Numbered from the stretch's first letter, positions 12,060-56,170 are shown. The stretch is DNA of 64,000 bases from Epithemia pelagica (GCA_946965045.2 OX337234.1:2604001-2668000); one strand, 5' to 3'. Numbers and translations are program-made. The notes: generated by a model from the sequence alone, not told the origin.

Positions 12060-12134
12060 GAGTCCAATTGTTATAGACCGTAAAATAATCATTCAAATAA
12101 CAGATAAAAAAAATCTCTTGCTGAGCACGACTCC

Positions 12135-16224: not shown

Positions 16225-16281
16225 CTACCGGCACATCATTGCCCAGGTTCGACTTGCGCCCGTTCGCCGTGGTCTGATGAA

Positions 16282-20153: not shown

Positions 20154-20221
20154 CTACCACTTTTCACATCAAATGTATCTCACTATTCTGTTATGGTATC
20201 ACTATTTTGTCCGCTCCAACA

Positions 20222-21818: not shown

Positions 21819-21935
21819 CTCACCTCTTCCGCAACCGTATCTTTGTGCCCATGTCCTACGCCCTCCAATTGTCCTATCGGCTACTCCCTCACACTCCGCA
21901 GTCAGCTGTGGTGGCTAGTCAAGGCAAAGACATGT

Positions 21936-22109
21936 GGTGCAGACGCTAGAGGGTTAGATCCCGATGATCTACTCCTCAGCGTTTCCGCTGTTGGCAGGCT
22001 CCCGATGACTCCTAGTCATCAGAAGCCACAACCAACCAGCGGAGTCTTTCCCTAAAGCTACCAAAGGACTGCAGCGTTAGCAAGCAATTCGCCGAGGGCA
22101 GGCGGATTG
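21936..22109 (+). repeat. Split direct repeat B (copy 1)
   Basis: 174 bp, matches 44270-44443 and 44600-44773. Confidence 0.93.
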
Positions 22110-37500: not shown

Positions 37501-38554
37501 TTTCTTAAACACAGTACTCACCAACGACGACTCCTTTCCCCAATTCCCTCCAGGTTTTAGCCCCTTTCTTCTCCGCGGTCCCCTTGCCGGTCAATTGCTT
37601 TGGGCAGCTCATCAGTTTGATCAAGCTCAAACTCGAGATGCATGGTCGACATTGGCTTCCTCGCAACCCAGTCACACGCTACAACTGTCTCAGGCCCTTC
37701 TCCATCACACCTGTGACCTGTTTCAACAATTCCTCCGCTGGGGCGCCCAGAATCGTACCAAAATAGCTTGCCCCGCCACCGCAGACCCTGAAGGCTTTGT
37801 TCCCCAGTGCACTCTCATCTACGATGTGAGCCCGCACTCAACCGACTCAAATCTCACCTACTGTTTGGATTGGAGATCCACCTTTACCCTTTTATTTACG
37901 GCTCCTACAATACTCTCCCACCAACACACCAACTCCATGTCACCCTTGTTTTGCCGCTCCACCCCCAACTATCTCCTACCATCTCGTCCTGATCACCGGA
38001 GTGACTCTCGTTCTCCTCTTGAACGCTACGATCGTGCCCAACGGCGTCGCTCCCCCTCGGACCGTCCTCCTGACCGTGCTGCCGACCAACCACCGCCCAA
38101 GCGTGCTCGTTCTGACTCCGCTCAACCCCAACGTCGCCCTGGCCAAAAAGCTCTCGTCCCGCTTGTCACCCTCACTGCGGCAGGGAAAGAACGTTATACC
38201 CACTCAGGTAAGCTCCTTGCCGACCTCGCGTCTTCCCTCACCATTCCCCGTTTCGACCAAAAGCAATATTGCTTTATGTACATCGACAAAAACTCTGTTG
38301 TCGGGTGCACCGGTCCCCATCGTTCACGCACAAACTCGGAAGGTCAACCGTTGCAATGCAATCGACACCACGTCTGCCTTTCTCCCCAGGCTATCTCCAA
38401 CTGGCCCCAATCCTCCCTTAAACCGCTCTGGGAGTTCTGTCACCATGATCGCGTTCGACACCTTCTCCAACCTACACCGGAATTTGCAGCCCACATGGCT
38501 TCCGACCGTCCGAACCGTCCAAACGCCCCCCAACAACCCCCGCCCTCATCGTGA
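34454..38554 (+). CDS. ORF1 (gag-like, Pro-rich, C-terminal Cys/His cluster); start 34454, 34481 or 34727
   Basis: 1366-aa ORF; C-terminal CFMY...GCTG...CNRHHVC; position 5' of RT. Confidence 0.8.
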   Translation: MSRSLPTAAMELRVFGATQSLPSLLLVFFFLSSFFLVFAFASFVMSLSFAINPTLRGLISPDTTQSFLSFSPSGLFKPVASTTTYPNQFSGMSPLHPTDLQNSKDFIFLSPEEKSKEIQKEFLANLLSLNFGPNNSSPDATVVTSPAKYTLAADSPTIAGFLAVVQLDSAPTTDPSKLSSKIPPPSGPYLVVLGPTAFAFNGKGLQAHVFSDTPQKISSSQFRFPTTLIAPAFAFQSGIRPQSISQLNPYSWITSHPSSILASLRAHRALFSTVILEQSTSRLHSPDDPWHSLWIPSQDSPPHAHQIFSRLHRVDEPILTIQVENTSPIEGSWIALSALPLPRHHHLPIGLLFDPASIPDSASLINAILGWNQTYNPMPATRSSHLKDLATTLSWLDVPFVNDWLLTVSQRADDFATVWHTSKQIATDLTTLKNVPISTNLPRSYPARIHPYEALFVHPFFSLTTKLFSDALLQNNPSHTMRTKFFTFFREKANMLSSQDVDLFLPQNIPHVDNTHTYVPFLFRPQTQSWSTSYGFKSFSSFDVQKYLPDFLNHLPNDHLAQRVISTPHDRSPSSSLNPPQPNTVTRLNVDSPDKPSQKNPPSSPQTPEVRPFPLEPPAESLPRRPTAFHPPTARIPSPAALDPSPRFPAPVPVSRAPLQPQQMEPQQRAPPTPQQLEPQQPPPQPHQNRLLVGPDPPPFPTQHPIQQLPPRPPSRQEHFLPPLPPPRLQRSPSTSTANAYSNASPHAPHNPPRRPTHYHPASPAMESYHSQSFNPLAHQRQAWDAPLVSTTTSPWYLPVDNPTWFTSTRLKYVHSTLASSAYLPLIRRTMEERGQFTFDRFIFQDTDQLPPHVVQWAFLGIVALPTDLRLVDPNLPTTTRRPSYSHELLHTPSHLNNDWLRQVLPYAGADHRSSAAEVAAIDLLAAAIEASKYPVAPFRVDFSQSFLHAEAPRKALRTFRINAGQTLHLDDPKSLYLSLTPWHFLWSIPLSPEGRLPQQGLSCTQFKLFFHHIVFFLNTVLTNDDSFPQFPPGFSPFLLRGPLAGQLLWAAHQFDQAQTRDAWSTLASSQPSHTLQLSQALLHHTCDLFQQFLRWGAQNRTKIACPATADPEGFVPQCTLIYDVSPHSTDSNLTYCLDWRSTFTLLFTAPTILSHQHTNSMSPLFCRSTPNYLLPSRPDHRSDSRSPLERYDRAQRRRSPSDRPPDRAADQPPPKRARSDSAQPQRRPGQKALVPLVTLTAAGKERYTHSGKLLADLASSLTIPRFDQKQYCFMYIDKNSVVGCTGPHRSRTNSEGQPLQCNRHHVCLSPQAISNWPQSSLKPLWEFCHHDRVRHLLQPTPEFAAHMASDRPNRPNAPQQPPPSS

Positions 38555-38611
38555 CTACCGGCACATCATCGCCCAGGTTCGACTTGCGCCCGTTCGCCGT
38601 GGTCTGATGAA

Positions 38612-41464
38612 ATGCCTCCCACTTCACCAGAGACATTTTATCCCACCTCTACGGCAGATCTTCTCCTCTCCCTTCCCGCTCCCACTACTGAGGCTGTCCC
38701 TACTGTCCCCAAACTACCAGTATTTCCTTCTCACCCACGTGCTGCCCCCTCTCGGGTCTCCTATGCGTTGCCAACGTTGCACACGGTGTTAACCACCGTC
38801 AACCCCTTTTTGACCGACGCCGATCGCTCCCAACTCCTCCTTGCCTCTTCCTCCTTGGTGCCCAACTGGGGAATTCTTCCCCTGTTCCCTCTCTGGTCGT
38901 TCACACACCATCGCAAACGAATTGGTTTCGGTCCCGACCGTCTCAACGTCGGCACATCCCATGCTGCTCCTGACGGCACTCCCCTTGCGGCAACCGCACC
39001 ACATGTTGTTTCCCCTGAATTGCTCGGCCACTACGCATGGGATTTCTTGTCCCCACAGGACCAACAAAACCTAGTCGCCTCCTCGCCAAGCTTCCACTTC
39101 TATCATCGTCTCCGCGTTGCCGCTGCTCATGGCACCTCTCTCGCTGTCTGTCGCATGCCCCCCTGCGAAGACAAATCCCAACCCCTTCCATTCCGTAAGG
39201 CTTTTCTCCTTGCCGTTGCCCTTTGTCGCGCAAACTTCGTCTATGCGGACATGTACCGCTGGCTTGGTGGAATCTACAATAATCATCACAGACGCCTGGC
39301 GGACACCTTCGACATCATCGACCGCGTCAAAGCTTTTGAGCCCCCACCGGACTATCCACGGTTGGACTATGCCCGCACTTGGCAACTTTTTCACCTGGGC
39401 GCCCCTCTCGCAGGCCACTATTCCTGTAGTCGTGTTGCCGTTTCCCAACGCAACCTCCTTGACAACTACCCCGGGGTCCAAGAAAACTTAGAGGAAATCA
39501 CCAAAAAGTTCAAGAAAGAGGAACAGCTACAGTATCATCTTTTCCTTCCCCGCATTATCTGGCGGTTCCTCCCCGGTCTTTTCCTTTCACTCATTAACTG
39601 GGTAGCGCCCAAACCCCACCGCATCGGCGACACCGGCCGCTTGTGCATCGATCCAAGCTCCAAAATCACAGCCACTGATGACGGCAACACCAATGCCCAA
39701 ATTCCTGATGCTGGACGTGACGATGACTGTAACCCCGCGGTGGCTTACGGCACGGCTTTCCTACGCTTTTTGCGGTACATCTACAATCTGCGTATTGACC
39801 ACCCCTCGGAAGACATACTGCTCAGCGCCGATGATATCAGTGCTGCCTTCCGTCGGGTCACATACAACCCCAACGCTGCCTTAGCATTTGCAAGCGTCCT
39901 CGGCTGGTTCCTCCTCATACCCGTTGGAATGATTTTTGGCGCCAAAAACAGTCCTTCCTACTACATGCTACCGGGGGAGCTACGAGCCCATCTCTCTCGT
40001 TACCTTGCTGAGCTCACTTCCGCTCGTACTCTTTTGGCGGACACCATTGCTATCCCACCTCCTCCGTCCCCCCGCACCCTCAGAACCTTAACGCCCGCCA
40101 CTCCCGACGCTCTAAATCAAGGCACCTCCCACTTGTTAGCATCCCAACCGTCCTCCTTCCCTCGTCCGGTGTATGCTCCGTTCGTTGACGACACCGGTGG
40201 AGCGGCCATCCGCTCGGAGATCCACCGGTTAGTCAATAGCAGTATTCTCGCCGCATACGTCACCTTCGGCTTCCCCGACGAAGACCCCCATCGACCCGAT
40301 CCTATTAATCCAATAAAATTTGTGCGTGACATCAGTCACAGCCTGAAATTCCTGGGGTATATCATCAACACTCGAACTATGACAATTTCCTGGCCGTCCC
40401 ATAAACAGACACAACTACAGGTCTATCTTCAACACGCCCTCGACCTCCCCACCACGCACTCCGACGGGCGTCGGCTTTCACCGCAAATGGCGGCCACAAT
40501 TCTCGGCCTCGTCCGTCACAGCGCCCCAGTCTCACTCTTGGGCGTCTATTACACGTTGTCCCTCCAGTATGCACTCAACGACCGCCTCCGTGCCACCGCA
40601 GCAGCAGGCAAATCCACCCGTGCCGCCTCCTTTTGGCACAAAACCCGGTTCACCCTCAACCGAGAAACCGTTATGGACCTCCGAACGCTCTTGGCCACCC
40701 TCCATTCTTCTCGGACCCACATTTGGACCCGTCCCATTGCTTTATGCATCCCGCGGGTTTCGCAATTTGAAATTTTGGGCGACGCTTCCATTGAAGGGCT
40801 GGGAGGCTGGTTATCCACCCACTACCCCTTCATGTGGAGACTCACCAAACCCGACTTACTTCGCCTGGGCTTCATCCTACCAAAAGATATGCAGTCCACC
40901 AAATTATCCGATCCAACTCAAGACACGCCCGATGCACTGTGGCACATCAACTTGCTTGAATTCGTCGTCCTTCTCATAAACTTCTGGTTCTTGCAGCGAC
41001 TGGCTTCTCACGCTACACCGCAACCCCAAACCCTTGTCATCTCCATGCGCACCGACAACACGTCGGCGCTCTCGTGGCTCTCCCATGCCGCCCGTGCCAA
41101 GCGGCCCGCAACTCGTCGTCTTGCTCGTCTTTTTCAAGCCATGCTCACTTCTGCCCCTATTCCCGTTCAATTACAGGCCTCGCATATTGCAGGCGAGCTC
41201 AATCACAATGCCGACCTGTTGTCCCGCCCGTCCCTTGCGCCCACTTGGGCCTCCGTTATCGAGCAGTCCAAGCCAGTGCTGGACCCATCCACCGCCTACC
41301 GCGTGCCCTCCAAGTTGCTATCAATGATATTAACAAGCTTCAAATTCAACAGGACCGAGGACGAACTAGGAACAAGAATGATCGAACTTTGGACTCTCGA
41401 GGCGCTCACTTTTCCCGATGGTCCGCTCGCAATCACCTCACCCCCGAACTTTTATCTCGCCTGA
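38612..41464 (+). CDS. Reverse transcriptase + RNase H (DIRS/Ngaro type)
   Basis: RLCIDPS, DDISAAFRRV, GMIFGAKNSP, FVDD, KFLGYII; RNase H GDASIEGLGG, HINLLEF, TDNTSA, HIAGELNHNADLLSR; no DIRS methyltransferase domain follows. Confidence 0.93.
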   Translation: MPPTSPETFYPTSTADLLLSLPAPTTEAVPTVPKLPVFPSHPRAAPSRVSYALPTLHTVLTTVNPFLTDADRSQLLLASSSLVPNWGILPLFPLWSFTHHRKRIGFGPDRLNVGTSHAAPDGTPLAATAPHVVSPELLGHYAWDFLSPQDQQNLVASSPSFHFYHRLRVAAAHGTSLAVCRMPPCEDKSQPLPFRKAFLLAVALCRANFVYADMYRWLGGIYNNHHRRLADTFDIIDRVKAFEPPPDYPRLDYARTWQLFHLGAPLAGHYSCSRVAVSQRNLLDNYPGVQENLEEITKKFKKEEQLQYHLFLPRIIWRFLPGLFLSLINWVAPKPHRIGDTGRLCIDPSSKITATDDGNTNAQIPDAGRDDDCNPAVAYGTAFLRFLRYIYNLRIDHPSEDILLSADDISAAFRRVTYNPNAALAFASVLGWFLLIPVGMIFGAKNSPSYYMLPGELRAHLSRYLAELTSARTLLADTIAIPPPPSPRTLRTLTPATPDALNQGTSHLLASQPSSFPRPVYAPFVDDTGGAAIRSEIHRLVNSSILAAYVTFGFPDEDPHRPDPINPIKFVRDISHSLKFLGYIINTRTMTISWPSHKQTQLQVYLQHALDLPTTHSDGRRLSPQMAATILGLVRHSAPVSLLGVYYTLSLQYALNDRLRATAAAGKSTRAASFWHKTRFTLNRETVMDLRTLLATLHSSRTHIWTRPIALCIPRVSQFEILGDASIEGLGGWLSTHYPFMWRLTKPDLLRLGFILPKDMQSTKLSDPTQDTPDALWHINLLEFVVLLINFWFLQRLASHATPQPQTLVISMRTDNTSALSWLSHAARAKRPATRRLARLFQAMLTSAPIPVQLQASHIAGELNHNADLLSRPSLAPTWASVIEQSKPVLDPSTAYRVPSKLLSMILTSFKFNRTEDELGTRMIELWTLEALTFPDGPLAITSPPNFYLA

Positions 41465-42486
41465 CCGATAACGAATGCATACACATCCTACACCTTTACC
41501 TACATCACGTCACAAACGGCGAAAACTACTACAGGAGGTCCGACCTAGCAGCAGAAACCATTCAATCTTATGTAACGGCTGCCCATTCCGCACTTCAGGT
41601 TGCCCTCAACCGCCCTGTTAACATCTCCAACCCAACCAACTCAACCCTGCTGCACCCACTGCTATCCGACCCATTACAATTTCATCGTCGCTGGCAACGT
41701 CCACGCGATCGTAAGGAACCCATCACCGATGCCATCCTTAGCGTGCTCTATTGCCGTGCAGTCGGGGCCCCTCCTTCGTCACTTGACGCAACTCTCTTCG
41801 ACTGGGTCCGGCTTGGCCTCTTTACTGGCTCCCGTGCCAGTGAATTTGCCCAAACCTCTGGCTCAAAGTTTGTCTTCGCGGCCGTTCCCAATTGTCCTAA
41901 TGATCCATCCTGGAACGATCGACCTATTGCCTTTGTCTCCAGCGACTTCGTCTTCTTAACTCAAGCGAACGACATGCTTCCACTTGCTTCCCTCCCCAAA
42001 CACGAACACACCGTCTCGGCAGTCCAGATCCGCTTTCGGCATGACAAAAGCGCTCATAATTTCACGAAACGCATCTTCCGTCGTTCCGGCCACTCTTATC
42101 TCTGTCCCGTGCTCGCATCCTGTTCAATTGCCCGCCGCTCCCTCTCCCTCCAAATCGGAGCCCACCTGCCCCTCGCCTCCTATCAGGTCAAACCGGGAAA
42201 AATAGCCTACCTTAGGTCGGCCGATATCATCACAGCCCTCCGTCAAGCTTGCCTGGAGGCGTACCCAAACCCTCACAACTACCACCGGCGTCACGCCCAC
42301 TTGCTCGTCGCCCATTCTACACGCGTCACAGCCGCTGTAGCGTTGTGGAACGTTCAAGTTCCCCTCCCCCAAATTGCCTTCAGACTCCGATGGCAAGAAG
42401 ACTCGATCAAACACTACCTCCGTGACTGCTCGAAAGCAATTGGTCCTCATAGTCAAGCGGCCATTGCAGGCGTCCTAAATATTTAA
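41074..42486 (+). CDS. Tyrosine recombinase, overlapping the RT/RH 3' end in another frame; true start uncertain
   Basis: Catalytic R (GLFTGSRASEF), HxxR (HSTR), W...Y (RWQEDSIKHY). Confidence 0.93.
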   Translation: MALPCRPCQAARNSSSCSSFSSHAHFCPYSRSITGLAYCRRAQSQCRPVVPPVPCAHLGLRYRAVQASAGPIHRLPRALQVAINDINKLQIQQDRGRTRNKNDRTLDSRGAHFSRWSARNHLTPELLSRLTDNECIHILHLYLHHVTNGENYYRRSDLAAETIQSYVTAAHSALQVALNRPVNISNPTNSTLLHPLLSDPLQFHRRWQRPRDRKEPITDAILSVLYCRAVGAPPSSLDATLFDWVRLGLFTGSRASEFAQTSGSKFVFAAVPNCPNDPSWNDRPIAFVSSDFVFLTQANDMLPLASLPKHEHTVSAVQIRFRHDKSAHNFTKRIFRRSGHSYLCPVLASCSIARRSLSLQIGAHLPLASYQVKPGKIAYLRSADIITALRQACLEAYPNPHNYHRRHAHLLVAHSTRVTAAVALWNVQVPLPQIAFRLRWQEDSIKHYLRDCSKAIGPHSQAAIAGVLNI

Positions 42487-42554
42487 CTACCACTATTCAC
42501 ATCTAATGTATCTCACTATTCTGTTATGGTATCACTATTTCGTCCGCTCCAACC

Positions 42555-43151
42555 TTAAATCCTCGCTATGTTCTTGTCCGCTCGAGAATAACGCACGCCA
42601 TTGTCGGTCTCCACGTGGATACGTGCGTCTGTTACCTTCACCACCCGCCCAGTTGGGTCAGCGGGATCGTTTGGGTTTCGAATCCGAACCCGCTCACCAA
42701 CTTTGAAACGCTCCTCCGATCCACGGCTCGCCCGCCGACCCATAAATCCACCTTGTGTTCGTGGACTAGTACGTCCACGGGGACTCGGTCCACCCACCCC
42801 TTTGCTTGCCACTCGCCAGACCCATCTTCCTCCACGGGCCGTCGACCCTTCCTCTCGGCCCCGTGGTGTGCCCTCTCGCATTCCTTCTCTGCCCGTAGGG
42901 CCCACTCCATCGGGCTCCCACTCCCCCCCTCCTCCTCCGTTGGCCACAGCTGCGTTCGCTGCCGCCACCACATGAATCGCCTGCTCCACTCTCCTCTCCG
43001 CCAATTCCTTCAATTCGAGCAATCGATTAGAGATCTCCACTTGCCTCTCGGCCATCCGTCCCAACTCTCTCATAATCTCGGCCATTTGAGCCTGCCTATC
43101 CGCCATCTGATCCAGCTCGTCAATCAACTCGGCCATCTCCTCCATCTTCAC
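42555..43151 (-). CDS. Antisense accessory ORF B: N-terminal coiled coil, C-terminal KOW/SH3-like barrel
   Basis: Heptad-like MEEMAELIDELDQMADRQ...; RFKVGERVRIRNP...GRVVKVTDARIHVETDNG; 3 of 4 inter-copy changes in the barrel are synonymous on this strand. Confidence 0.6.
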   Translation of the reverse strand: MKMEEMAELIDELDQMADRQAQMAEIMRELGRMAERQVEISNRLLELKELAERRVEQAIHVVAAANAAVANGGGGGEWEPDGVGPTGREGMREGTPRGREEGSTARGGRWVWRVASKGVGGPSPRGRTSPRTQGGFMGRRASRGSEERFKVGERVRIRNPNDPADPTGRVVKVTDARIHVETDNGVRYSRADKNIARI

Positions 43152-44152
43152 TCACTGTCTGATTCCGACTTCGACGCGCGTCCCGAAGAATCGCCAGACA
43201 GGATAACCACTTCCGGTAAATGTTTCTTCCACGTCAACCGCTCGTCCTCTGTTGCCGTGTTCTCCCTCGTCGCCGTATTCTCCCTCGTCGGAGTTTCCTT
43301 AATCGATTTCTCCCTTGTGGGAGTTTCCTTTATCGACCCCAGGCCTTTCTCCTTGGGCGAAACACTCGCGCTCCTCTTCACAGGGGCACTGCTCTTGCGC
43401 TGCTTTTTGGGTAGGGTACTGAAACCCGGTTGGCCCAACCACTCTTCCAACGAACGCTTCTCGTGCTTCGAAAACGCTTCACCAGTTCCTCTCCCTTCGG
43501 ACCTCTTTTTACCCGCCTCGGGTTTCTTATTTTTTCGGTCGGATGCTGCAGCATCCGTCGCGGCTCTCCCTCCGGGAACTGGCACAGGCAATCCACGGCG
43601 GGCAGAGTTCTGCGCGAACAACTCACGAACAACGGCCACTTTTCGTTCCACAACCTCCTCTGCAGAAGGCCTCTCCCGTCCGCCAGCCAAGGCCAATCCA
43701 CAAATCTGGTGGAAAACGACTTCTTGGTCTTCCGGGTGCGGAAACAACAGCTCTAGAGCCACCACGACCTTCTTGTTGCTTGGAGATGCTCTTCGAAACA
43801 CCGTTTCCACGAAGTCTTCCCCGTCCCCTCCTTCCTCCGCAAAAGTCTCACACACACGGGTCACCAGTCGATCGATCTCCGCTTGATGGTCGCCCACCAA
43901 CTCGCGCACGTTTTTCTGCGTCTGAATCACCGACGCCTCTTTGGATGCAAGTATTCCGCCATGCACGTCTTCCAAATGTTGACGCTCCTGGGCGTGCAAC
44001 ACGCGAGTCTTATCCAGCTCTGTTTCCGCGATATCCACTCCTCCTAAAGCGCAGTGTAATTCTTTGCGTTGTGCCTCGACAACTGTTTTTAAACGATCCA
44101 GTTGTTCAGCAGTTGTTTCGCTTTCTTCTGTTCTCCGAGCTGCAGAACTCAT
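43148..44152 (-). CDS. Antisense accessory ORF A: charged coiled-coil protein of unknown function
   Basis: 334-aa ORF conserved in copy 1; KETPTRE/NTATRE repeats; stop overlaps the start of ORF B. Confidence 0.55.
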   Translation of the reverse strand: MSSAARRTEESETTAEQLDRLKTVVEAQRKELHCALGGVDIAETELDKTRVLHAQERQHLEDVHGGILASKEASVIQTQKNVRELVGDHQAEIDRLVTRVCETFAEEGGDGEDFVETVFRRASPSNKKVVVALELLFPHPEDQEVVFHQICGLALAGGRERPSAEEVVERKVAVVRELFAQNSARRGLPVPVPGGRAATDAAASDRKNKKPEAGKKRSEGRGTGEAFSKHEKRSLEEWLGQPGFSTLPKKQRKSSAPVKRSASVSPKEKGLGSIKETPTREKSIKETPTRENTATRENTATEDERLTWKKHLPEVVILSGDSSGRASKSESDSE

Positions 44153-44269: not shown

Positions 44270-44773
44270 GGTGCAGACGCTAGAGGGTTAGATCCCGATG
44301 ATCTACTCCTCAGCGTTTCCGCTGTTGGCAGGCTCCCGATGACTCCTAGTCATCAGAAGCCACAACCAACCAGCGGAGTCTTTCCCCAAAGCTACCAAAG
44401 GACTGCAGCGTTAGCAAGCAATTCGCCGAGGGCAGGCGGATTGTGTGCGCCAGCGACAGGACACTCAGGTAGCTACACGTAGTCTAGCTAGATCACACTA
44501 GCTATGTCTAGGAGTCTGCCAACAGCAGCCATGGAGCTCAGAGTTTTTGGAGCAACGCAATCTTTACCAAGTTTGCTGTTGGTCCCACCACTCCCTCCCG
44601 GTGCAGACGCTAGAGGGTTAGATCCCGATGATCTACTCCTCAGCGTTTCCGCTGTTGGCAGGCTCCCGATGACTCCTAGTCATCAGAAGCCACAACCAAC
44701 CAGCGGAGTCTTTCCCCAAAGCTACCAAAGGACTGCAGCGTTAGCAAGCAATTCGCCGAGGGCAGGCGGATTG
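44270..44773 (+). repeat. 3' split-direct-repeat block B1-A2-spacer-B2
   Basis: B1 44270-44443 = B2 44600-44773; A2 44444-44583 = A1; spacer cccaccactccctccc 44584-44599. Confidence 0.95.
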
Positions 44774-44801
44774 TCGTCGAGATCACCAATCTTGTTCCAT
44801 C

Positions 44802-45530
44802 ATGATCCTCCTTGGATTTATTGACATTGTGATGCTCATTCTGCATCCAACAGTAGTGCTGCGACAAAGCCAAAGGTCAATTGTACTTTCAAAGACAAGG
44901 TTCACAACTGCCATGAGCAAGCAAATGTGGGACGAGCGATATGGGTCAGATACCTTTGCCTACGGCACCGCGCCCAATGAGTTCCTCGAACAATCATGGC
45001 CATCCTTGGATTTGTCGGCTGGTTCCAAATGTCTCTTGTTGGCGGAAGGAGAAGGTCGCAATGGAGTCTACCTAGCCGAGTTGGGTATGGATGTGACAGG
45101 TGTCGATATCAGCAAGGTTGGTCTGGATAAGGCCCAAAAACTGGCAGCGGAACGAAAGGTTACCATCCAGACGCACGTGGCGGATTTGGCCTCCTTTGAC
45201 TTTGGCACGGCACAATGGGACGCAATCGTTGGTATCTACAGCCACTTTCCACCAAATGTGCGCCAACGAGTATTGGATGTCATTCCGGGAGCATTGAAAC
45301 CGGGTGGATACTTTGTGTTGGAAGCCTATCGACCGGGACAGTTGGACTACAAAACGGGAGGTCCACCCAACGCTGCCATGATGTACAGCAAAGAGATATT
45401 GGAGCAAGCCTTTGATGGAAACAAACTGGAAATTATTCGAAACGAGGAATTGGTTCGAAGAGTTGTTGAGGGGCAATATCATACAGGGAAAGCTGCAGTT
45501 GTACAATTCATTGGAAGAAAGTCAACTTAA
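44802..45530 (+). CDS. Class I SAM-dependent methyltransferase, bacterial TehB-like (core starts ATG 44913)
   Basis: WDERY...YGTAPNEFL, LLLAEGEGRNGVYLA, VTGVDIS, ALKPGGYFVLEAY, TGGP; intronless. Confidence 0.85.
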   Translation: MILLGFIDIVMLILHPTVVLRQSQRSIVLSKTRFTTAMSKQMWDERYGSDTFAYGTAPNEFLEQSWPSLDLSAGSKCLLLAEGEGRNGVYLAELGMDVTGVDISKVGLDKAQKLAAERKVTIQTHVADLASFDFGTAQWDAIVGIYSHFPPNVRQRVLDVIPGALKPGGYFVLEAYRPGQLDYKTGGPPNAAMMYSKEILEQAFDGNKLEIIRNEELVRRVVEGQYHTGKAAVVQFIGRKST

Positions 45531-45631
45531 CTTAATTTAGGAACGGCCAATTTGCGAATCCAACTATCCGTATCAACGAGTCGAAGTTAGCTGCAATATG
45601 CATCGGCACTAATGCCTTGGTTGACGAGACC
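45531..45631 (+). repeat. Diverged ~120-bp direct repeat, copy A (split by the Ginger-like element; continues at 53892-53910)
   Basis: Aligns to 55968-56087, e.g. tttgcgaatccaactatccgtatcaac...gccttggttgacgagacc. Confidence 0.85.
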
Positions 45632-45839
45632 TGTTACCCAACTTTTAGCACTAAAAACAAATAGCGCACCGAAAAATACAAATGCACGCACCAAAAAAAA
45701 AATTCCTTGCGTTTTCCTTAGCGTTACAATATTCATCGTTTTTTCACAACCCATCGTTTGTATCCATTATTTCTTTTGTTTTGCGGCTCCGTCTTCATTC
45801 CTATTCCTTTTCCCTTCTCCACCATCACCATCCGGCATA

Positions 45840-46445
45840 AGGGCTGGGTAAGCCGATCCATGTTCGGCTAAGTAGGCTCAGTACATTAATCTACGTAGAG
45901 TACATAAAATCAGATAGTACACGTCACGCCGGAAATGGTCGGAATTTCCAAAAAATGCAAAAACGCTCGACAATGATGGCGAGATCCGGTGACGCCGTAT
46001 GCATTCACCCATGCATCGCATAAACATCCAACCACCGTAAGTCCTTTGCCTTTACCTTTGAAATTGTTGTCTAAAATTAAAGAAGATTTGCCAAGTTGGC
46101 TGAAAAGGTACGCTCATTTTTCTGCAGTGATGAAATCGAACGACCGCCCTAACTCACTCATTTTTCAATGCTGACTCGACCGAATTGAAAGCATAGTCAC
46201 TCTAGTAGTAAATAATCTTATTGTCAAAGCGGTCGAGTCAAGCTCTATTATTGAGGAAGTTATGGCCATGGGGGTGACGGCTTCCACCATTGTCGAGTGA
46301 TGGCTTCCAGTTTGCATTGTTTCTCGTGGCAGCAAGTTTTCAATTTGAGACCATCCGCCCCACTTGTTACACTGATGAAAATAGTACTACGTAGATTAAT
46401 GTACTGAGCCTACTTAGCCGAACATGGATCGGCTTACCCAGCCCT
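45840..46445. mobile_element. 606-bp MITE nested in the left arm of the Ginger-like element
   Basis: Perfect 59-bp TIRs 45840-45898 and 46387-46445; TA at 45838-45839 and 46446-46447. Confidence 0.9.
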
Positions 46446-46690
46446 TATCATCATCCAATCCATCCCTTGTTTCATGGAGAGCACTTCTATTGCCGCAGTG
46501 CCATCCTTTCACCTTATTATCATTGTTTTTAAATGATCATCTGTCGTACCTCATCGGGTCACCATTGTCCATTCTGTGGTCCCCAATCTCTCATTTCTTT
46601 CCCCCAACCCAGATAAAGAGACATTGAGTCCCGGTAACCCTTGGTCTTATTTGTCGAGTGTTTTGTTTCCAAATGTCGCAACATTTGCCT

Positions 46691-46804
46691 ACAAATAAGT
46701 GCATATTTGTGACAAATACAATAACGTGAGTTTTTTTCTATCATATGTGGTCTACAAATACGTGCACTGCATCTATTTGTCGATCCGGTCGACAAATAGA
46801 TGCA
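46691..46804. promoter_or_regulatory. Cluster of ACAAAT-N3-TGCA motifs (candidate transposase-binding sites) including a perfect 16-bp hairpin
   Basis: Motif at 46691, 46754, 46792 and inverted at 46768; inverted copies at 53822 and 53853 near the right end. Confidence 0.55.
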
Positions 46805-47287
46805 AATCTCATGACGTCATCTCCACTTATGCCTTTATTTTTCCAGATCTTTGTGACAGCATTGTCGCACACGTGACAAACTCATCTGCCAAACGCACCT
46901 TTGCTTCTGTTCCAACCATTCTTCCTTGTCGACCTGGTCCTGCTTGTACCCCTTTGACTTCCTGGTACGTTCATTACATGATTCCAATGGATTGTGCTAT
47001 ATGATCTAACAACGACACAAATCTTTTGCTCCAACGCCATTGATTCCCTTCGTTTATTTTTGTTTCGGAACTACCACCCTCTGCCATCAGAGTTGATCAT
47101 TGGCTTTGGTTCCTTTCTTTTTGATCTACCTTTTTGAGATCGACACAGAATTTGTCCGGCGCAAGCGACACTGTGGTAGCTTGGCTGGCTGGTGGTGTGA
47201 GTGACACTGTGGTAACTCGACCAGCAAATTCTGTTCCTCAATACGTATCCCCAAGACAATTTCCCATCCTTGAATGCTGAACCAAGA

Positions 47288-50200
47288 ATGTCTCTCAGGA
47301 AGAAGAAGGGCAAGGATACCGGAAAGGAAGAACAGATCTCTGCTGAAGATTTCAACCTACTCCGTCGTTTTATCAATTTGATCAAGCCCCTAACAAATGA
47401 TTCTGCAAATGTCTCAAATCAGAGAGAAGACAACTCTGGTTCTGACAGTGATTTTACAGATTCCAACCCTGATGACGAGTTATCTGACGATTCGAACAAT
47501 ACAACACCTACACCCACACGTGTTACAAGATCTACAACCGGTGCATCTTCCCACAACAACCGTACCTCTCAAAATTTGAAAAGGAGAGGCTCTACTACGT
47601 CTCTTTCACGCTCAAGAAAGGAACGTCCTAGAAAGTATCAGAAGTCTGAGAAGAAGGGCAGAGTTCAAGCTAATGCAGAAGAAGAAATGCATGTAGATGA
47701 AGATGTTGGGTCTGATGAAGAAAATCTTGTCAGTCATGTCGACCCTCAGGATCTCCCTGAGACGTTCGATGGAAATTTAGACGAAGAGCATCGTCATAGA
47801 TTTAACCTTGAAGTTTTTGGTAACTCATTTGCTGATGTTGCGAATCTTTCACCCGAAAGTGGGGTTGCTGGTGCAAATACCAAGTTCATGTCCAGGTCCC
47901 AAATGGATCATGAAATATATATCAAAAGATTCTGGAGTACTGGCGACCCAAGAGCCAAGGGTCCTGCATACAAGGGTGCACCTGACCCTAGAACACCTAT
48001 AGGATTTCGTAAACTGTATCCTCAAGGACGAAATGCAAAGCTTGTGCGAAGAGAGGTTCGATCAATTACGTTACCTGATGGTACAGTGGAATATTTATTG
48101 TACGACAGAGACTTACGGGTTGTTGCCGTTGAGGACGTGTTTGATACAATAAGAGAGAAGCATATTCAAACTGGACATAAGCTTTCAGAAGAGACGACTT
48201 ACAACCTCATCAAGAATGAGTACCATAACATCACTATTCGCCAAGTCAAAAGTTTCATCAAGGGTTGTCCTCAGTGCATGTTGCAACGCAAGAAAACAGC
48301 ACCACACAAGGGAGCATCGAAACCTATTCGTTCCTTTGGTTTTCGAGACCGCTTCCAGGCAGACCTTATCCTAATGGATGAAGAAGGAAAGACAGGTGCC
48401 AAAGATATCTACGGGGTCGAAATGCATTACATTTTGTCTTGTAAAGACCATTTTTCACAGTTCGTAATGCTCGCTGCGGTACCAAGCAAGAGTCCCACCT
48501 ACATAGCTCATCAATTGGGAAATATGTTTGGTATTGTTGGTTTTCCAGCTATATACCAGAGTGATAATGGGTCTGAAGTATGTGGAAATGAAGTGATTTC
48601 CATGCTACTCATTAACAATCCCTACATCCACACATGTACTGGGAGGCCCCGTACTCCACGTGAACAAGGTTCTGTTGAAAACGCAAATAGGGGGATCAGG
48701 AATGCAGTGCAGTCAATTGTTGCAGAGGAATGGGCAAAAGGTAACAACACATTCAATTGGACCATGGCCCTAGGAAGGACGATGAGTGCATTGAATGGTG
48801 TTTCGCGACGAACGACAGCCAAGGCAATATCATCCTATGAAACTGTGTTTGGGGCTCAGTTTGGGTCCCCCTTTTCCGATGTCAAGGGATATTCACGAGA
48901 AGAAATCAACCTTGGAAAGACTGCTGTGGAACGATGTCGAGCCACTGGCAGTCAGGCGCTGACAGAAAAATTTGCCATCTGTGGAGAGATTACTCCTGAT
49001 GATCTTGCAAATCTTGGTGAGCTGGCAACATCACGAGTTCGTTACCTTATGGAACTATATCAAGCAACACAAGATGAGGTTGCGGATGAAAAGTTTTTGG
49101 CCGCAGGGAAAACAAACTCAAACGAGAATGACCAGCAAAAACCAATGCATAATCCCAGCGGTGAGGAAGAAGGACTTGATCATAAAGAGCCTGACATTGT
49201 GGAACGGAATGTCACAAGGGAAATGGGTTTGTTTTGCCGTGAAACATATGACTCTGTGATGCAGACGGATAGATCTACATCATTGGAAGAGCTATTGGAA
49301 AAAGAAACAATGCATTCCAGCAAATCAAGCCAAGAGTCCAACAAAATAGTCCAAGAGTCCAACAAATCAGTGCAGGAAACCAAAAAGTCGGCGCCAAAAC
49401 CTGACAAATCGGTGCAAAAACCCGGCAAATCGGTGCAGAAACCCGGCAAATCGGTGCAAAAACCGGGCAAATCGGTGCAAAAACCGGGCAAATCGGTGCA
49501 AAAACCGGGCAAATCGGTGCAAGAGTCCAACAAATCGGTACAAGAGTCCAACAAATCGGTACAAGAGTCCAACAAATCGGTGCAAGACTCCGACAAATCG
49601 GTGCAAGACTCCAGCAAATCGGTGCAAGAGTCCGACAAATCGGTGAAAGAGTCCAACAAATCGGTGCAAAAGCCCGGCAAATCGGTGCAGAAACCCGGCA
49701 AATCGGTGCAAGACTCCGACAAATCGGTGCAAGAGTCCAACAAATCGGTGCAAGAGTCCAACAAATCGGTACAAGAGTCCAACAAATCGGTGCAAGAGTC
49801 CAACAAATCGGTGCAAGATTCCAACAAATCGGTGCAAGATTCCAACAAATCGGTGCAAAAACCTGGCAAATCGGTGCAAGAGTCTGACAAATCGGTGCAA
49901 GAGTCCAACAAATTGATGCAAGAGTCAGACAAATTGGTGCAACACTCGAACAAATTGGTGCAAAAACCCAGCAAATTGGTGCAAGACAATGAAGAACTCC
50001 GAGAATCGTTAAACGCATTTCATAAATCTCTACAAAGGGACGACACCATGTGGCAGAAACAAGCCATGAGACCATCACTGGGTACGCAAGACATCCAATT
50101 GCAGGCACATGAATTGGTGGGTACAGAGAAACCACTGGAAAATATGGATGGAATGACGCACCATGACAATGATGACGAGTCCATTGTTGTTGTGGAAGAG

Positions 50201-51952
50201 GAAGAAGAAACCGACTATGAGATAGAAAGAGAATTTGATACGGAGGCTCCAATGTTGTGTACTGTTCTGCGCTTCTTGACAGCATCAGATAAGTACCAGA
50301 AGGCTGAACCCAAAGACAGGGTTCTACAAGTCCGTATTTACTGTGTGACATGCCCAGTGCTCCGGAACAGGCGTGTGTCTCTGGATATTCCCTCGAAATA
50401 TTGTTTACGACATTATTTTGGACCCTCTTCAACTGCTTGGCTACCAGATATATTGGTCCATTCATTTGGGGTTTTGTCTGCCCACTGGCATCATCGAGAA
50501 AATGTTGTTTTCTATGACGTTGCGCGCAATCTTGCAAGTAGTTCACTGAATGATATGAGGAAAGTTGTTGGACGACCATCTCTTTTGATAAAAAAGAATC
50601 CCAAAATCAACGAATTGATTGTCTTGGCCATGGCTAATGAGCATTACGTCATATTGCAAGTATTACTTCCTGAGAAAAAGACTATTGTCTATGATGGAAT
50701 GGAAAAGACAAATCACAAGGCATGGTCAAATGTAACCAAGTTTGTGCTTTGGAAATTCGGAATTCAAGGATTGGACAACGTCACCAAGCCCACCATCATC
50801 AAAGACACATCAAAAAAGAAAGTTACCGAAAAGTGGGTACTGGTGCGTGACTACAAAATGATCGGCATTCAACGTGATTCTCATTCATGTGGGCCAATAG
50901 CAATATTGGTTATAGCCTGTCTGTTTCATACGTCCAATGACAAGGAAAACAGGAATTTATCACAACTCCATCCAGCAAACATGAACAGATATCAATGGCG
51001 GGAAAATGCGGCAAACTTATTCAGGAAATATATATGCTTTGCATGGAATAACCTTTATGCACAGAAATATGTGGACCAAGAACAACGAGAAAACATCTGT
51101 GACATCAATACTGAAAAGCAGTGCAACGACTTCCTTGACGCACAACCACAACGCCGATCAAACAGGAATATATCACGAAGGTGAGAATCTTATTCATGGA
51201 AGGTTACCTATTGTTTGGATAAGCATTTCTTATAATAGATGTGTAGTGAGGTTGAAATTGTGGACGATACAGTGATTCGAGAAGAAAAAAGGTTGGAGAA
51301 TACGCTTCAGAGGCGCCTAGATCAATCTTATCAAGCTAGTAAAATGCTACGTATGAATCGAAGGTCAGGCTTCTCTGTTTCATTGGGTGAATCGGTGGCA
51401 TTATTCCCAGATAAAAGAGATCGTGCCACTCAATCAAGATTAGGCATTCACTGTTTAGTCATTGGTGTCTCAAATGGAAGCTATCCCGCTGTGAGAGTAA
51501 TGATCCCGGAAGGCATCATTGGCGATAAACGAAGCAAAACTTCTACGTGGTTCTCCCATGACAAATATAATGTCATGCACTCATCATCACCTTTAGGTCC
51601 TGAACGACGACAACTACGAAATGCCATTTCAAACAATACTCTGGTCTATACAGACTATCCCATAATCTCGGTACGTGATGCACATCGGGTAACATACAGC
51701 AGTCACAGAACTGTGAAGAAAAAACAACCTCCATGGAATAAACGAAAATTTAAATGTAACTGCAGACGACTTGGAATTCAATGTTCGACAGATAATTGTG
51801 GATGTCGAAAAGCAGGATTGTGCTGTTCAAATCAGTGCCTGTGTAACGAGCAGAGGTGCATGAATAGAAAAATTCACGGTGTCAGTTTGGCAGGCAATCC
51901 ACCAGAGACTAAGGCAGGCAGTGATGTGCCGAAAAACCACCCAACAGTGTGA
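47288..51952 (+). CDS. Transposase: HHCC + rve/DDE integrase (KRBA2/SCAND3-like) + 7-aa repeats + Ulp1/C48 protease + Cys-rich CXC tail; predicted exons 47288-51180 and 51247-51952 (1532 aa)
   Basis: HIQTGH...CPQC; RFQADL, KDHFS, QSDNGSE, QGSVENAN; Ulp1 EHYVIL, VYDG, QRDSHSCG; CNCRRLGIQCSTDNCGCRKAGLCCSNQCLC; AG|GTGAGA...TGTAG intron 51181-51246 joins the two ORFs in frame. Confidence 0.85.
49331..49990 (+). repeat. Coding 21-bp tandem repeat (~30 units; KSVQKPG / KSVQESN / KSVQDSD variants)
   Basis: aaatcggtgcaagagtccaac and aaatcggtgcaaaaaccgggc units in frame within the transposase. Confidence 0.95.
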
Positions 51953-53676
51953 CCCTCTTCTCCTTTGGTGGATTTAGAACGATTGTGTCTTGAAGTACAA
52001 TGCTGTATGACTCTGCCGTCAAATAATATTGTAACTCCGTGTGTCAGTTTGACCACAAGACCATTGTAGGAGCGACCATCAACTCTGAGAAGAATGTCGG
52101 GAAAAACAAAGAACCAGTCACTCGTAGAATGAGGTAAGGTCTCAGCAAAAGCAACCAGACAGACGCTGGCATCATTGATGTCAACATGAGCAGCGTTCTC
52201 CAAGTCCACACTGATGGCAATATTTGATGAAAAACCATTGTTGCCACCCAATTCGTCAGGAATCTCAATGCTTGCTTGGTTGCTCAAACTCCGAAATAAT
52301 GGACGAACACCGGGATATTGAATGTCAGCCAAATCAGCAATTCCCATACAAACCGTCTTTACACTTGATTTCAAATCCATGTTAGAGTCAGAAACAGGAA
52401 TGCACGTAATCTTCTGTTGATAGCGATTAAACATAACCCCAAATCCACACATTTGTCCGTTGTCTCCTGCTTTCCGTCGAGCATTACCACCGGACGCAAA
52501 TGTTTTATCAGCAACAACATCAAGTGAAGCATGGACTAAATCCTGGTACAACTTATTCGATGATGGTATGTACGATACAACAATATTTGATTGACCACAT
52601 GGCCTCTTGTCAGGATCCAATGTAGTTGTTTGGAACACGTAGCAGTTTCTCTCGTGTGCTCTAGGATCATGGACATAAGCAGTTGAGTCTTGAAGGTTTT
52701 GATATAAAGCTTGTGTGACATACCGGCGACAGCCATGTCTATTTGATGCAGATTGAGCAAACAAAGCACGGTAGAATAGTCTTCGATCTTGCACATCTTG
52801 GATCACGTTTTTGCCAAAACAATCAGGTGGAAGCAGTGGAGTGTCCGGATCAGCATCATGAAATTGTATGCTGTGAACAGTCTTTGGGATTTCCGAAGAT
52901 GTGGTATAGTTGACAGTCCAGACATGGTTGATGGTTTTGATGAAACTGCCTTTAGCTGGAAGGCCAGTCTTGTATACCAAGCGCAACCACGAAAGGGGTA
53001 GTGGTACAAGAGGTGATGTCGTAATTGAACACCCAATCCCACTCTCTACTTCGCTGAAAAGTTTCGTTGGATCCGATATGAAGGCAGACGTCCAGAACAC
53101 AGAAGAATAAGGAAAAATAATAATGGTGGTGCGGAATATGTCATCGTGTTGGTCAGAACACAATTCTTTGGAGGTACGAATTCTGTGGACGACTTCGTAG
53201 TATGGGGTCTGTTCCGGAATACGTGGTTTCTGGTGTGAACGTGACAGAACACAATCCACTAAAAAGGCCCCATGCAACTCATGGGTCATCTGCAGAGGTA
53301 CAGCATCTTGGATGACCCATTTATGACTTGAAGGAATAGAAAGAGACGTTTGCAAACTTGAGAAACCACGCATGAGAATATGACGAATTAGACTTGGAAT
53401 ATCTGGCACAGACATTCTGCTCTTGGTGAAAGGGAGACCGTCTGTAAAATGTAGCTTGCACTGGCGAATGAAGATGGCTTGGAAGGAGGAGGGGAGAGAC
53501 AGAGAGAGCATTTCGGTCAGAAATAGCTTGAAGTCACCTGTGTCAAAGCAGAAACGTTCGTGCTTCACAGGATTGCGAACAGACTGATAGACGTGGATGA
53601 TTCCTGGAGGACGGTGGCATTTAGACTTGCTCTTCTGTTTGGCTAATGGGCGGTTCTTTTTCTTACGGGGAGACAT
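51874..53676 (-). CDS. 2OG-Fe(II) dioxygenase, TET/JBP-like, 600 aa, with N-terminal NLS-like basic patch
   Basis: NIAISVDLENAAHVDINDAS (HxD, 52188-52180), WFFVFP, LVVKLTHGVTILFDGRVIQHCTS (distal His 52002-52000), upstream RRKAGDNGQMCGFG; N-terminus MSPRKKKNRP. Confidence 0.72.
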   Translation of the reverse strand: MSPRKKKNRPLAKQKSKSKCHRPPGIIHVYQSVRNPVKHERFCFDTGDFKLFLTEMLSLSLPSSFQAIFIRQCKLHFTDGLPFTKSRMSVPDIPSLIRHILMRGFSSLQTSLSIPSSHKWVIQDAVPLQMTHELHGAFLVDCVLSRSHQKPRIPEQTPYYEVVHRIRTSKELCSDQHDDIFRTTIIIFPYSSVFWTSAFISDPTKLFSEVESGIGCSITTSPLVPLPLSWLRLVYKTGLPAKGSFIKTINHVWTVNYTTSSEIPKTVHSIQFHDADPDTPLLPPDCFGKNVIQDVQDRRLFYRALFAQSASNRHGCRRYVTQALYQNLQDSTAYVHDPRAHERNCYVFQTTTLDPDKRPCGQSNIVVSYIPSSNKLYQDLVHASLDVVADKTFASGGNARRKAGDNGQMCGFGVMFNRYQQKITCIPVSDSNMDLKSSVKTVCMGIADLADIQYPGVRPLFRSLSNQASIEIPDELGGNNGFSSNIAISVDLENAAHVDINDASVCLVAFAETLPHSTSDWFFVFPDILLRVDGRSYNGLVVKLTHGVTILFDGRVIQHCTSRHNRSKSTKGEEGHTVGWFFGTSLPALVSGGLPAKLTP

Positions 53677-54131
53677 GGTGGATGGTATGTGTCGAAAAGG
53701 AAAGTGAGGTGGTACGAAGCAACAGAAATTAATGGTGGAGGAACGATGAGGAAGCTACGCTAAGATATGAGGAGTTTATCAATCCGTGACTGACTTCGAC
53801 AAATCACGTAGGTGCAAACTGTGCACTCATTTGTTCGGACAAATGACCGCAATGCAACCATTTGTCGTTTGCACTCAAATGTTGTGTAACAGCCCTCAGT
53901 TCTGCTAGGTCTAGCTAGCATACAGACTCCCGACGCCCCGCGATAATGTGTGTAACGTGTTTTCTAGGAGTAGGAGTACGTGGAGAAAGCACGCTAGGTA
54001 GACTACCAGAACACACAAATTCCAACCGAGAAATTTCGTCGTCGATATCTGATAGGAGTAGGAGTAGCCATGATATATGAAACACAGACGGAGCTACAAA
54101 GCACAGGGAAAGCTCAAGTGGAAGTGCGACG

Positions 54132-54162
54132 ATGGCAACTACTGCAGGGGCAGAAGAAAGGA

Positions 54163-54221
<59 letters not shown>

Positions 54222-55652
54222 CAATGGACCTTGGAACGGTTTCGTTTTAAGGCTCCCGAGGAAAAAGGACATTCGTTCGGCGCAGGGAACGGTTTCGGGC
54301 CTTTCGTTATCGAGAGGTTCCCACTCCGTCGCGAAATCTTGAACTCCGCTAATCCGGATCGTTCGTATCATATCAGCGGTTGCAAGGGGGCCGGAAAGAC
54401 TATCCTCTTGAAATTAATTGGACTGGACCTACTCGGAAAGGCAAAGTCGGTCTATTTTTTCAAAAATTCCAACGACATTGATCTTGTTCGATTCGATATT
54501 GAAAAAGTCATCGCTAGCAAGGAAGAGGCGTACTTCCTCATCGATGAGACGCAATCGAACGTGGGTTCGACCGTATTTACGCTTTTGCTGAAGAATGATG
54601 TCCATCACCGCGTCACAACAATCGGGGCGGGTGTTCCTGCCTTTCAATCCCTTTCTTCCGCTTTTACACGGGAAATCACGACGAATCGATTGTTCTTAAC
54701 GGAGTCTGAACTAGCCGCTGAGGGAGTGACGGCTTTCTTCGTTGGTGACACGTTCGACAACACAATTCGCTCTCAAGTCGAATTACTGCTTGTGAACATC
54801 CTCACCTTTGTTGGCGGGCACGTGTATCCTCTGATGCGACTTGCCGAGTTGCTTGTACAGCCTGTCAAACAGGGAACTCAAACGGCCAACCTTGCCATCA
54901 CACGCTTGAATTCAAAAAACTTTCGCAACATGGATGACTTTAAGGATCTTTCTTCGAGGATCACTCCATCTTTTGACGACGTCAACATCCGCACAATTTT
55001 TTACCCAAAGAAGCATAGTCTGAGTCCAGAGGTCCTCGAGCTGAAGAGGCGTGGATTTTGCGATGAAAATGGGAAGGTAGTGTCAATGTTGCTCCTCGAT
55101 CTCTACCTCAGTGAGACTGGAGCGGAAGGATCTGCTACGCCTCTTACAGCTCTTCAGGCTGGTGTGTCTGGTGTTCAAGATCTTCTGTGTTGGGGTGCGC
55201 CAAGGATGGATTGGTCTTCCTACAACGAACGCGGAGGGGCGGTCAAAGATGCGCTGACATTCGAACTGTTGCATGAATTAGCATGCGTTGAGCCACTTGG
55301 AGTGATGCTGTTCAACCCAAAGCTTGTCATGGCTAGAACGGCATCTCGCAGACCTGATATTTACTTTGACTCTACTGTTCATTGCTACGTGGAGTGCGTG
55401 CTGACCAAAGCAAACACTGCGACCGCACGAAAGGATGTGGAGACGCACATTTTGCGCTTTTATCCCGGAAGCAATCAAAAGGCACACTATGAAATCCAAG
55501 AGGCTGATTTTGCAATATTGCACTATCAAGATTGGGGAAATGCTCCTATGCAGTTGGAGGAGACAACTTGTGCACAGTGCTTCAACGAGAGAGTCTTTAC
55601 TTTCTTGATGACAACGAAACAACTCTATCTGGGAAACATGCTTATTTCTTGA
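54132..55652 (+). CDS. Crinkler/RHS-type NTPase + REase-fold protein with N-terminal (TA)n repeat
   Basis: Walker A SGCKGAGKT, Walker B YFLIDE, GGHVYP; C-terminal RRPDIYF...YVECVL. Confidence 0.7.
54163..54221 (+). repeat. (CAACGG)9+ microsatellite encoding Thr-Ala repeats
   Basis: Direct reading of the sequence. Confidence 0.95.
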
Positions 55653-55967: not shown

Positions 55968-56087
55968 CTTAGCTTAAGAATAGCCTATTTGCGAATCCAA
56001 CTATCCGTATCAACAAGTCGAAGTAGCTTACAATATGCATCGGCAATAATGCCTTGGTTGACGAGACCTCAGGTCTGATGTGTCTAA
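55968..56087 (+). repeat. Diverged ~120-bp direct repeat, copy B (contains the empty Ginger target site)
   Basis: Aligns to 45531-45631 + 53892-53910. Confidence 0.85.
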
Positions 56088-56170
56088 TTCAAAGCAAAGA
56101 GCATACTGTGGTCGATTCAAGTTCTTCGACCTTGGAGGCAGAAGCTGGACTGCTCTAGCGTTCTCGACTC

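Follow-up and report, generated by a model that had tools for sequence, protein, structure and literature searches.

Why should a DNA transposon carry, beside the enzyme that moves it, a second enzyme whose predicted shape recalls those that oxidise methylated DNA? The question is raised by a 64,000-nucleotide stretch of the Epithemia pelagica genome (GCA_946965045.2 OX337234.1:2604001-2668000, one strand, 5' to 3'; hereafter 'the window'), in which positions 45632-53891 form a complete DNA transposon of 8,260 bp that encodes an integrase-type transposase and, convergent with it, a 600-amino-acid (aa) protein with the predicted fold of the TET/JBP dioxygenases. Among the heritable restraints on transposons DNA methylation is the chief one, and, to our knowledge, TET/JBP enzymes are the only ones known to attack the methyl group itself. 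The answer to which we incline, and which we think probable if some way short of secure, is that this is a mobile, Ginger-like, cut-and-paste transposon whose TET/JBP-fold enzyme oxidises 5-methylcytosine (5mC) against silencing.

Recognition of the enzyme begins with its shape. A model of the cargo protein, predicted with AlphaFold (AF2) from an alignment of 64 relatives (predicted local distance difference test, pLDDT, 87.8; predicted template modelling score, pTM, 0.90), was matched best by TET2 in VIA-align (Z 20.5), with CMD1 (17.2), CcTet (16.9) and NgTET1 (16.6) behind it. The best 16 entries in the PDB all belong to these four proteins (Z 15.8-20.5), and a gap of about 4 Z units separates the TET/JBP structures from the next group, composed of ALKBH3 (12.4), FTO (11.8) and AlkB (11.4). 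Foldseek searches of the PDB, Swiss-Prot models, AFDB clusters and the ESM Atlas likewise placed TET2, CcTet, CMD1, NgTET1, JBP1/2, fungal Tet-like 2OG-Fe(II) oxygenases and phage Tet_JBP proteins at the top. The predicted fold groups the protein with TET/JBP and sets it clearly apart from AlkB, FTO and the other 2-oxoglutarate (2OG) oxygenases. A preliminary description of this DNA had proposed a TET/JBP-like cargo from the sequence and had named kinship with AlkB or prolyl hydroxylases as the finding that would overturn it; structure comparison sided with the former. It is residues ~130-600 of the predicted model that superpose best on TET2, NgTET1, CcTet, CMD1 and JBP1/2 (Z 16-20), and the protein shares with them an HxD motif, a distal histidine some 50-60 residues further on and conserved arginines, but it differs in having only 7-12% sequence identity to them and no hidden Markov model (HMM) match, and the Cys-rich or CXXC module of animal TETs is missing from it.

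Residue conservation tells a compatible story. Across 89 relatives H497 and D499 are invariant, whereas H546 is retained in 77, H559 in 86 and R555 in 74, and position 558 is occupied by R in 74 and by K in a further 7; the HxD...H motif noted earlier is thereby upheld, with H546 and H559 as candidates for its distal member. By the strand pattern of the model, H546 and R558 open the two strands of the last hairpin, which is where 2OG oxygenases usually place their distal His and 2OG-binding Arg, and this hairpin position makes R558 a candidate for the residue that binds 2-oxoglutarate. The window copy has Q at this position through a private CGG>CAG change, R being present in the other four copies of its family (family A, below), and its own enzyme may be impaired by this R558Q replacement. 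The N-terminus is strongly basic (MSPRKKKNRPLAKQKSKSK) and, by inspection only, resembles a nuclear localisation signal (NLS). Public data hold relatives in about 520 clusters at 50% identity, none of them annotated. One distant relative of the oxygenase domain, the 1,165-aa protein P0129, is fused behind a DEAD/DEAH helicase, an arrangement that recalls the oxygenase-helicase pairing of JBP2 in reversed order.

The enzyme gene is part of the transposon and not an accident of this one locus. Close homologues of the cargo protein all come from the window's own assembly, as some 40 predicted proteins in six 90% clusters (in ENA assembly ERZ21939226 the window locus itself, L007, is found at 100% identity), and the copies fall into at least four deeply diverged subfamilies. 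Subfamily A comprises the window copy and L004, L005, L006 and L008, at 97-99.6% nucleotide identity over the whole element; the enzymes of B (L001), C (L002 and L003) and D (L009) are respectively 67%, 59% and 49% identical to that of the window. Gene order is the same at every locus examined: the enzyme gene comes first, a convergent third open reading frame (ORF3) overlaps its 3' end, and the transposase follows. The cargo gene lies between the termini in five family-A copies and in B, C and D copies at other loci, and its ORF is intact, at 593-636 aa, in the diverged subfamilies. The alternative in which the homologues would be single-copy host genes without any link to the transposase is thus not what this genome holds, since they are multicopy and transposase-linked. 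Between subfamilies, enzyme and ORF3 alike have a nonsynonymous divergence (pN) of 0.20-0.35 against a saturated synonymous divergence (pS) of ~0.8, and within family A the ratio dN/dS is ~1; as is usual for transposons, the active lineage is under selection and its copies decay neutrally once inserted. In this one genome, purifying selection has preserved the gene set across at least four deeply diverged subfamilies.

Two deletion derivatives illustrate how the parts may be separated. In L002:9807-15686 the integrase core is gone, with the enzyme, ORF3 and the Ulp1 part of the transposase retained, and in L013:9772-13576, only 3.8 kb long, the enzyme gene is cut at residue 556 and the transposase is missing. 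Both are flanked by a perfect 4-bp target-site duplication (TSD) despite these deletions, and both were therefore mobilised in trans.

The family is young and still mobile. Its ends are exact, in that the four other family-A copies align from 53891 to 45632 and stop there, giving the same boundaries as the bounded 8.26-kb element with TGT...ACA ends that had been drawn from the window by itself. The termini are TGTTAC...GTAACA (TGTTAC or TGTTGA across all subfamilies) and the terminal inverted repeat (TIR) is ~33-35 bp long and imperfect, with ~25 of the 35 outermost bases matching. In a contig found in two public sequencing runs, 45600-45631 passes straight into 53896 and beyond, with a single GACC between the flanks; because this empty allele exists, the insertion is polymorphic or hemizygous, and because it contains GACC once, the target was GACC and the right-hand duplicate departs from it by one base. 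The preliminary description was correct in the length of the duplication, but the two copies, GACC and GCCC, are not identical. It had also pointed to an empty site nearby. The segment it meant, at 55968-56068, shares 87% identity with the left flank, runs on for ~25 bp that resemble the right flank, and is a paralogue and not an allele; the true allelic empty site is the one in the run contigs.

Eight copies of five lineages have 4-bp duplications, five of them perfect and three with one mismatch: AATC/AATC, GATC/GATC (twice), GATT/GATT, GACC/GACC, CATC/GATC, GATT/GAGT and GACC/GCCC. The mismatched pairs (in the window and in the flanks of L004 and L003) occur though the copies are 97-99.7% identical to their relatives, and exceed what decay after insertion predicts, for which error-prone gap repair may be responsible. 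Duplications of 3 bp, or shifted ones, were considered as a cause and rejected, as none suits all copies. The window copy alone contains a nested miniature inverted-repeat transposable element (MITE) that the other four copies lack and which therefore falls outside the element proper; it is Tc1/mariner-like, and its perfect arms suggest a very recent insertion.

The transposase belongs to the integrase type. Pfam matches to rve and Integrase_H2C2 are found in the window protein and in every subfamily, and the zinc finger and the D, D and E residues align to the integrases of mouse mammary tumour virus (MMTV) and Rous sarcoma virus (RSV), in agreement with the DDE integrase-type transposase originally read from the plus strand. 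Searches with the transposase core returned only a handful of relatives. Its C-terminal part resembles a Ulp1 protease: Pfam Peptidase_C48 scores 21.5 and 22.5 bits, above its curated cut-off of 20.7, in subfamilies C and D, the C-terminus of the window transposase is homologous to these regions with the H/D/Q/C residues kept, and 79 of 100 Atlas feature matches are C48. An environmental relative of the transposase (L012:298-3628), which is 38% identical and matches rve, has behind it a separate ORF of 236 aa that weakly matches Ulp1, and this layout indicates that the pairing of integrase and Ulp1 exists outside the Epithemia pelagica genome, as two ORFs.

Where the transposase ends is less simple than the preliminary description supposed: of the 'exactly two intact long genes' that it listed, both (47270-51184, plus strand; 51874-53676, minus strand) are indeed intact, but a third conserved ORF at 51239-51952 had been missed. 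The transposase stop codon lies within a splice donor in all four subfamilies (GTGAGA, GTGAGT, GTGAGT and GTAAGT), and in all four an AG acceptor 58-68 nt downstream of that donor would fuse the transposase to ORF3 in frame. Since synonymous sites are saturated between the subfamilies, such conservation of donor and acceptor is hard to account for unless the intron is real, and ORF3 is probably, judging from these splice signals, the last exon of the transposase, with 51181-51246 as the intron. Readthrough of the stop codon into ORF3 was rejected as a general mechanism, for transposase and ORF3 share a frame in subfamilies A and C but not in B and D, and the donor is kept in all four. The C-terminal cysteine cluster of ORF3 weakly matches Tesmin/TSO1 CXC domains (E 0.0075-0.13); a profile search of ORF3 against the PDB returned no match, and structure prediction from four sequences gave no usable model (pLDDT 42.5). 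Its language-model look-alikes include the C-terminal regions of SCAND3/KRBA2-type, Ginger2-derived proteins, which we take as a lead only. The convergent coding overlap between the 3' ends of the enzyme gene and ORF3 is equally long, 79 nt, in the window and subfamily B (L001), shrinks to 70 nt in C (L002) and 19 nt in D (L009), and would give complementary RNA ends if both were transcribed.

Table 1. Coordinates of the element's features within the window (positions counted from its first nucleotide).
Feature	Position	Strand	Remarks
Left TSD copy, GACC	45628..45631	.	Same as empty-site sequence
Left TIR	45632..45666	+	Starts TGTTACCCAAC; ACAAAT-containing subterminal motifs next
Nested MITE, 606 bp	45840..46445	.	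45838-46447 with TA duplication; perfect ~60-bp TIRs
Transposase exon 1	47288..51180	+	ORF 47270-51184, 1,304 codons; first ATG 47288
H2C2 zinc finger	48161-48277	+	H298, H303, C333, C336
DDE core	48362 (D365), 48563 (D432), 48677 (E470)	+	
Tandem-repeat linker, 21 bp/7 aa	49250..50080	+	KSVQESN/KPG-type; copy number differs among element copies
Ulp1/C48 protease-like domain core	50600..50900	+	H1125, D1142, Q1201, C1207
Putative GT-AG intron, 66 nt	51181..51246	+	Donor GTGAGA overlaps transposase stop; removal fuses ORF3 in frame
ORF3, probable last transposase exon	51247..51952	+	237-aa ORF from 51239; conserved N-terminal half
CXC cysteine cluster, ORF3 C-terminus	about 51755-51868	+	
TET/JBP-fold 2OG/Fe(II) dioxygenase-like gene, 600 aa	51874..53676	-	3' end overlaps ORF3 by 79 nt
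HxD residues	52186-52188 (H497), 52180-52182 (D499)	-	
Distal residues	52039-52041 (H546), 52012-52014 (R555), 52000-52002 (H559)	-	
Q558 replacing family R	52003-52005	-	Window copy
Right TIR	53857..53891	-	Reverse complement starts TGTTACACAAC
Right TSD copy, GCCC	53892..53895	.	One mismatch against GACC
Paralogous copy of pre-insertion sequence, ~125 bp	55968..56092	+	Not the allelic site

Placing this transposase among its kin is a matter of degree. Ginger1 is defined by YPYY and GPY/F motifs, a CCGG or CCGT target and a Ulp1 or OTU domain, and Ginger2 by H2C2 plus DDE only and an AT-rich target (PMC2836005). With Ginger1 our element shares an integrase-like DDE domain with H2C2, TGTNR termini (here TGTTA or TGTTG), a 4-bp TSD and a C-terminal Ulp1 protease domain, the last being present in some Ginger1 families (PMC2836005). 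It differs in that no transposase or ORF3 of any subfamily contains YPYY or GPY/F (by pattern search, not profile), that its targets are GAYC-like (GACC, GATC, AATC, GATT, CATC/GATC) and not CCGG/CCGT, that its transposase measures about 1,300-1,540 aa against 500-800 aa in Ginger1, that the short, imperfect repeats described above may fall below the 40-270 bp of Ginger1 TIRs, and that an extra CXC module and a second gene are present. Ginger2/TDD elements have in common with it the combination of H2C2 and DDE without GPY/F or YPYY, a TSD of 4-5 bp and TGTNR termini, but the AT-rich RTATAY target is not seen here and Ulp1 has not been described for Ginger2. IS3EU/GingerRoot elements have TA..TA termini and a 6-bp TSD (PMC10045372, PMC6839031), in contrast to TG..CA and 4 bp. 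The label 'Ginger-like' given in the preliminary description holds for the DDE/H2C2 core, the TGTNR ends, the 4-bp TSD and Ulp1, but motif and target criteria set the element apart, and it fully fits neither the Ginger1 nor the Ginger2 definition.

If the host silences this family by methylation, the traces should be legible in its own decay, and so they appear to be. Among family-A copies CpG makes up 6.7% of sites, yet 29 of 123 substitutions are CpG transitions, and many of the differences at protein level replace R by C, W or Q; the window copy's R558Q (CGG>CAG) is itself one of these CpG transitions. Observed over expected CpG (o/e) is 0.76 in the element against 0.9-1.1 in neighbouring retroelements and host DNA, all of which suggests that CG methylation has long and persistently targeted this family. 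CG methylation restricted to transposable elements in a diatom is cited in PMC12344493. Within the window, where GC-rich retroelement blocks occupy about 5000-22000 and 35000-44000, the TET-carrying element is the most CpG-depleted repeat.

By analogy with fungal TET-carrying transposons (PMC12730594) and with the CG methylation that diatoms confine to transposable elements, we infer that the enzyme oxidises 5mC and acts against silencing. The element inserts by way of a 4-bp staggered cut; the cargo enzyme would enter the nucleus and there oxidise the 5-methylcytosine of DNA with the help of Fe(II) and 2-oxoglutarate; the oxidation would reduce or abolish the CG methylation by which transposons are silenced, and the transposase promoter or the element's ends might thereby stay usable. 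Such an enzyme would probably serve every copy in trans, since derivatives that lack a complete enzyme or a complete transposase still moved.

Several results pull the other way. The cargo protein and its close relatives gave no match in a Pfam scan at E up to 1, so that the comparison with Tet_JBP (PF12851) urged in the preliminary description came back empty for the window protein, and phmmer together with two profile searches against PDB sequences retrieved no TET chain; with these sequence searches empty, membership in TET/JBP rests on the predicted fold and motifs. On the supporting side, 3 of 64 distant relatives weakly match PF20515 or PF12851. The iron-binding distal His (H546 or H559) and the 2OG Arg (R555 or R558) are candidates only. 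Distant homologues on the metagenome contigs L010 and L011 do not sit beside this transposase, their neighbours being large proteins with no Pfam match and no similarity to this transposase or to one another. Furthermore, the enzyme is dispensable in cis, since L013 moved with its enzyme gene truncated, and if it is active it gives the lineage no visible protection from CpG decay.

Other ways of reading the same enzyme have to be set against this one. It might hypermodify or mark bases, whether by hydroxylating thymine as JBP does or by forming a 5mC adduct as CMD1 does, and so label the element's DNA or nearby chromatin with a mark that might change how transcription terminates, where nucleosomes sit or how the host silencing machinery recognises the DNA. 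CMD1 (Z 17.2) and JBP1/2 match the model about as well as true 5mC oxidases do, the family is very divergent from characterised TETs, to the point that the window protein is without a Pfam match, and the same possibility has been raised by Kojima 2025 for divergent fungal transposon TETs (PMC12730594); but the element encodes no glycosyltransferase or other follow-up enzyme and its best structural match is TET2, and we regard marking as unlikely. An enzyme that assists transposition directly, by making methylated ends or targets bindable or cuttable or by marking the donor site for repair, without any general de-silencing, would sit well with the retention of enzyme and transposase together over saturating divergence, with the CpGs of the subterminal regions and with the single mismatch in three of eight TSDs, which hints at unusual gap repair. 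The derivative with a truncated enzyme gene nevertheless moved, though supply in trans is possible, and we know of no integrase-type transposase that needs such a partner; such direct help seems to us quite improbable.

Slightly less credible again is a substrate other than DNA, in which only the fold would be shared and a general 2OG oxygenase, acting on RNA bases or hydroxylating proteins, would have been co-opted, for instance to alter proteins or RNAs of the host's silencing machinery. The enzyme is identified from its predicted fold only, the model also matches AlkB, FTO and ALKBH3 (Z 11-12), and RNA activity of some TET relatives is mentioned in PMC12344493; set against this are the best 16 PDB entries, all of them DNA enzymes of the TET/JBP family that stand about 4 Z units clear of the next group, top neighbours in AFDB and the Atlas that are Tet-like or JBP/TET oxygenase families, and the basic, NLS-like N-terminus. 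Transposons do capture host genes, and an enzyme dispensable in cis could be a passively captured passenger of no benefit to the element. An ORF that stays intact at 593-636 aa, with pN of 0.20-0.35 despite saturated synonymous sites, an invariant catalytic HxD and no single-copy host homologue among the close relatives, makes this last idea very improbable indeed. Oxidation of 5mC to counter silencing thus remains the reading we prefer. Its boldest extension, in which transposon-borne enzymes would be the diatom's only 5mC-oxidising activity and part of a large, hitherto unrecognised TET/JBP-like branch (the clusters counted above) that rides on integrase-type transposons and erases or rewrites CG methylation, we consider somewhat unlikely.

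Transposons that carry TET genes have a history in fungi. They are documented there for 11 lineages, and for fungi only, among them KDZ (Kyakuja, Dileera, Zisupton), Plavaka, hAT, IS3EU, Harbinger, EnSpm, ESTA and Helitron elements, with no Ginger element among them and with anti-silencing put forward as a proposal only (PMC12730594). Like those elements, the present one holds a TET/JBP-fold gene inside a TIR- and TSD-bounded unit and moves with it, is multicopy with ORFs mostly intact, occurs as several diverged families in one genome and has a host that methylates transposons; unlike them, it lives in what is apparently a diatom, its carrier is integrase-type and Ginger-like, and its enzyme is too divergent for the Pfam Tet_JBP and 2OG-FeII_Oxy_6 models. 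Fungal TET-carrying DNA transposons were reportedly treated by Iyer et al. in 2014. Full-text literature searches (Iyer et al. 2009 and 2014 lay outside these) found neither a pairing of Ginger with TET nor a diatom case, in keeping with the preliminary statement that no such pairing had been described.

Until now, all transposons known to have a TET of their own came from three fungal lineages, and no integrase-type (Ginger) element was among them. The appearance of such a transposon in a stramenopile alga, with an unrelated transposase and a very divergent enzyme, suggests that capture of methyl-oxidising enzymes is a general counter-defence of DNA transposons, and it brings to light an enzyme family that lacks annotation and escapes the present Pfam models. 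A practical test system comes with it: a young family with a polymorphic insertion, near-identical copies and a signature of CpG decay, in which R558Q, a truncated enzyme and transposase-less derivatives are already available as natural variants.

The surroundings of the insertion have features of their own. Just upstream of a methyltransferase-like gene (44802-45530) lies a perfect 175-bp direct repeat, its two copies (44270-44444 and 44600-44774) 330 bp apart. On the other side of the element, the neighbouring ORF in host DNA (54132-55652) encodes a STAND/AAA-type NTPase-like protein of 506 aa, and the 5' end of this ORF contains an ACGGCA-type hexanucleotide microsatellite (54165-54215) that reads as (TA)n in the protein.

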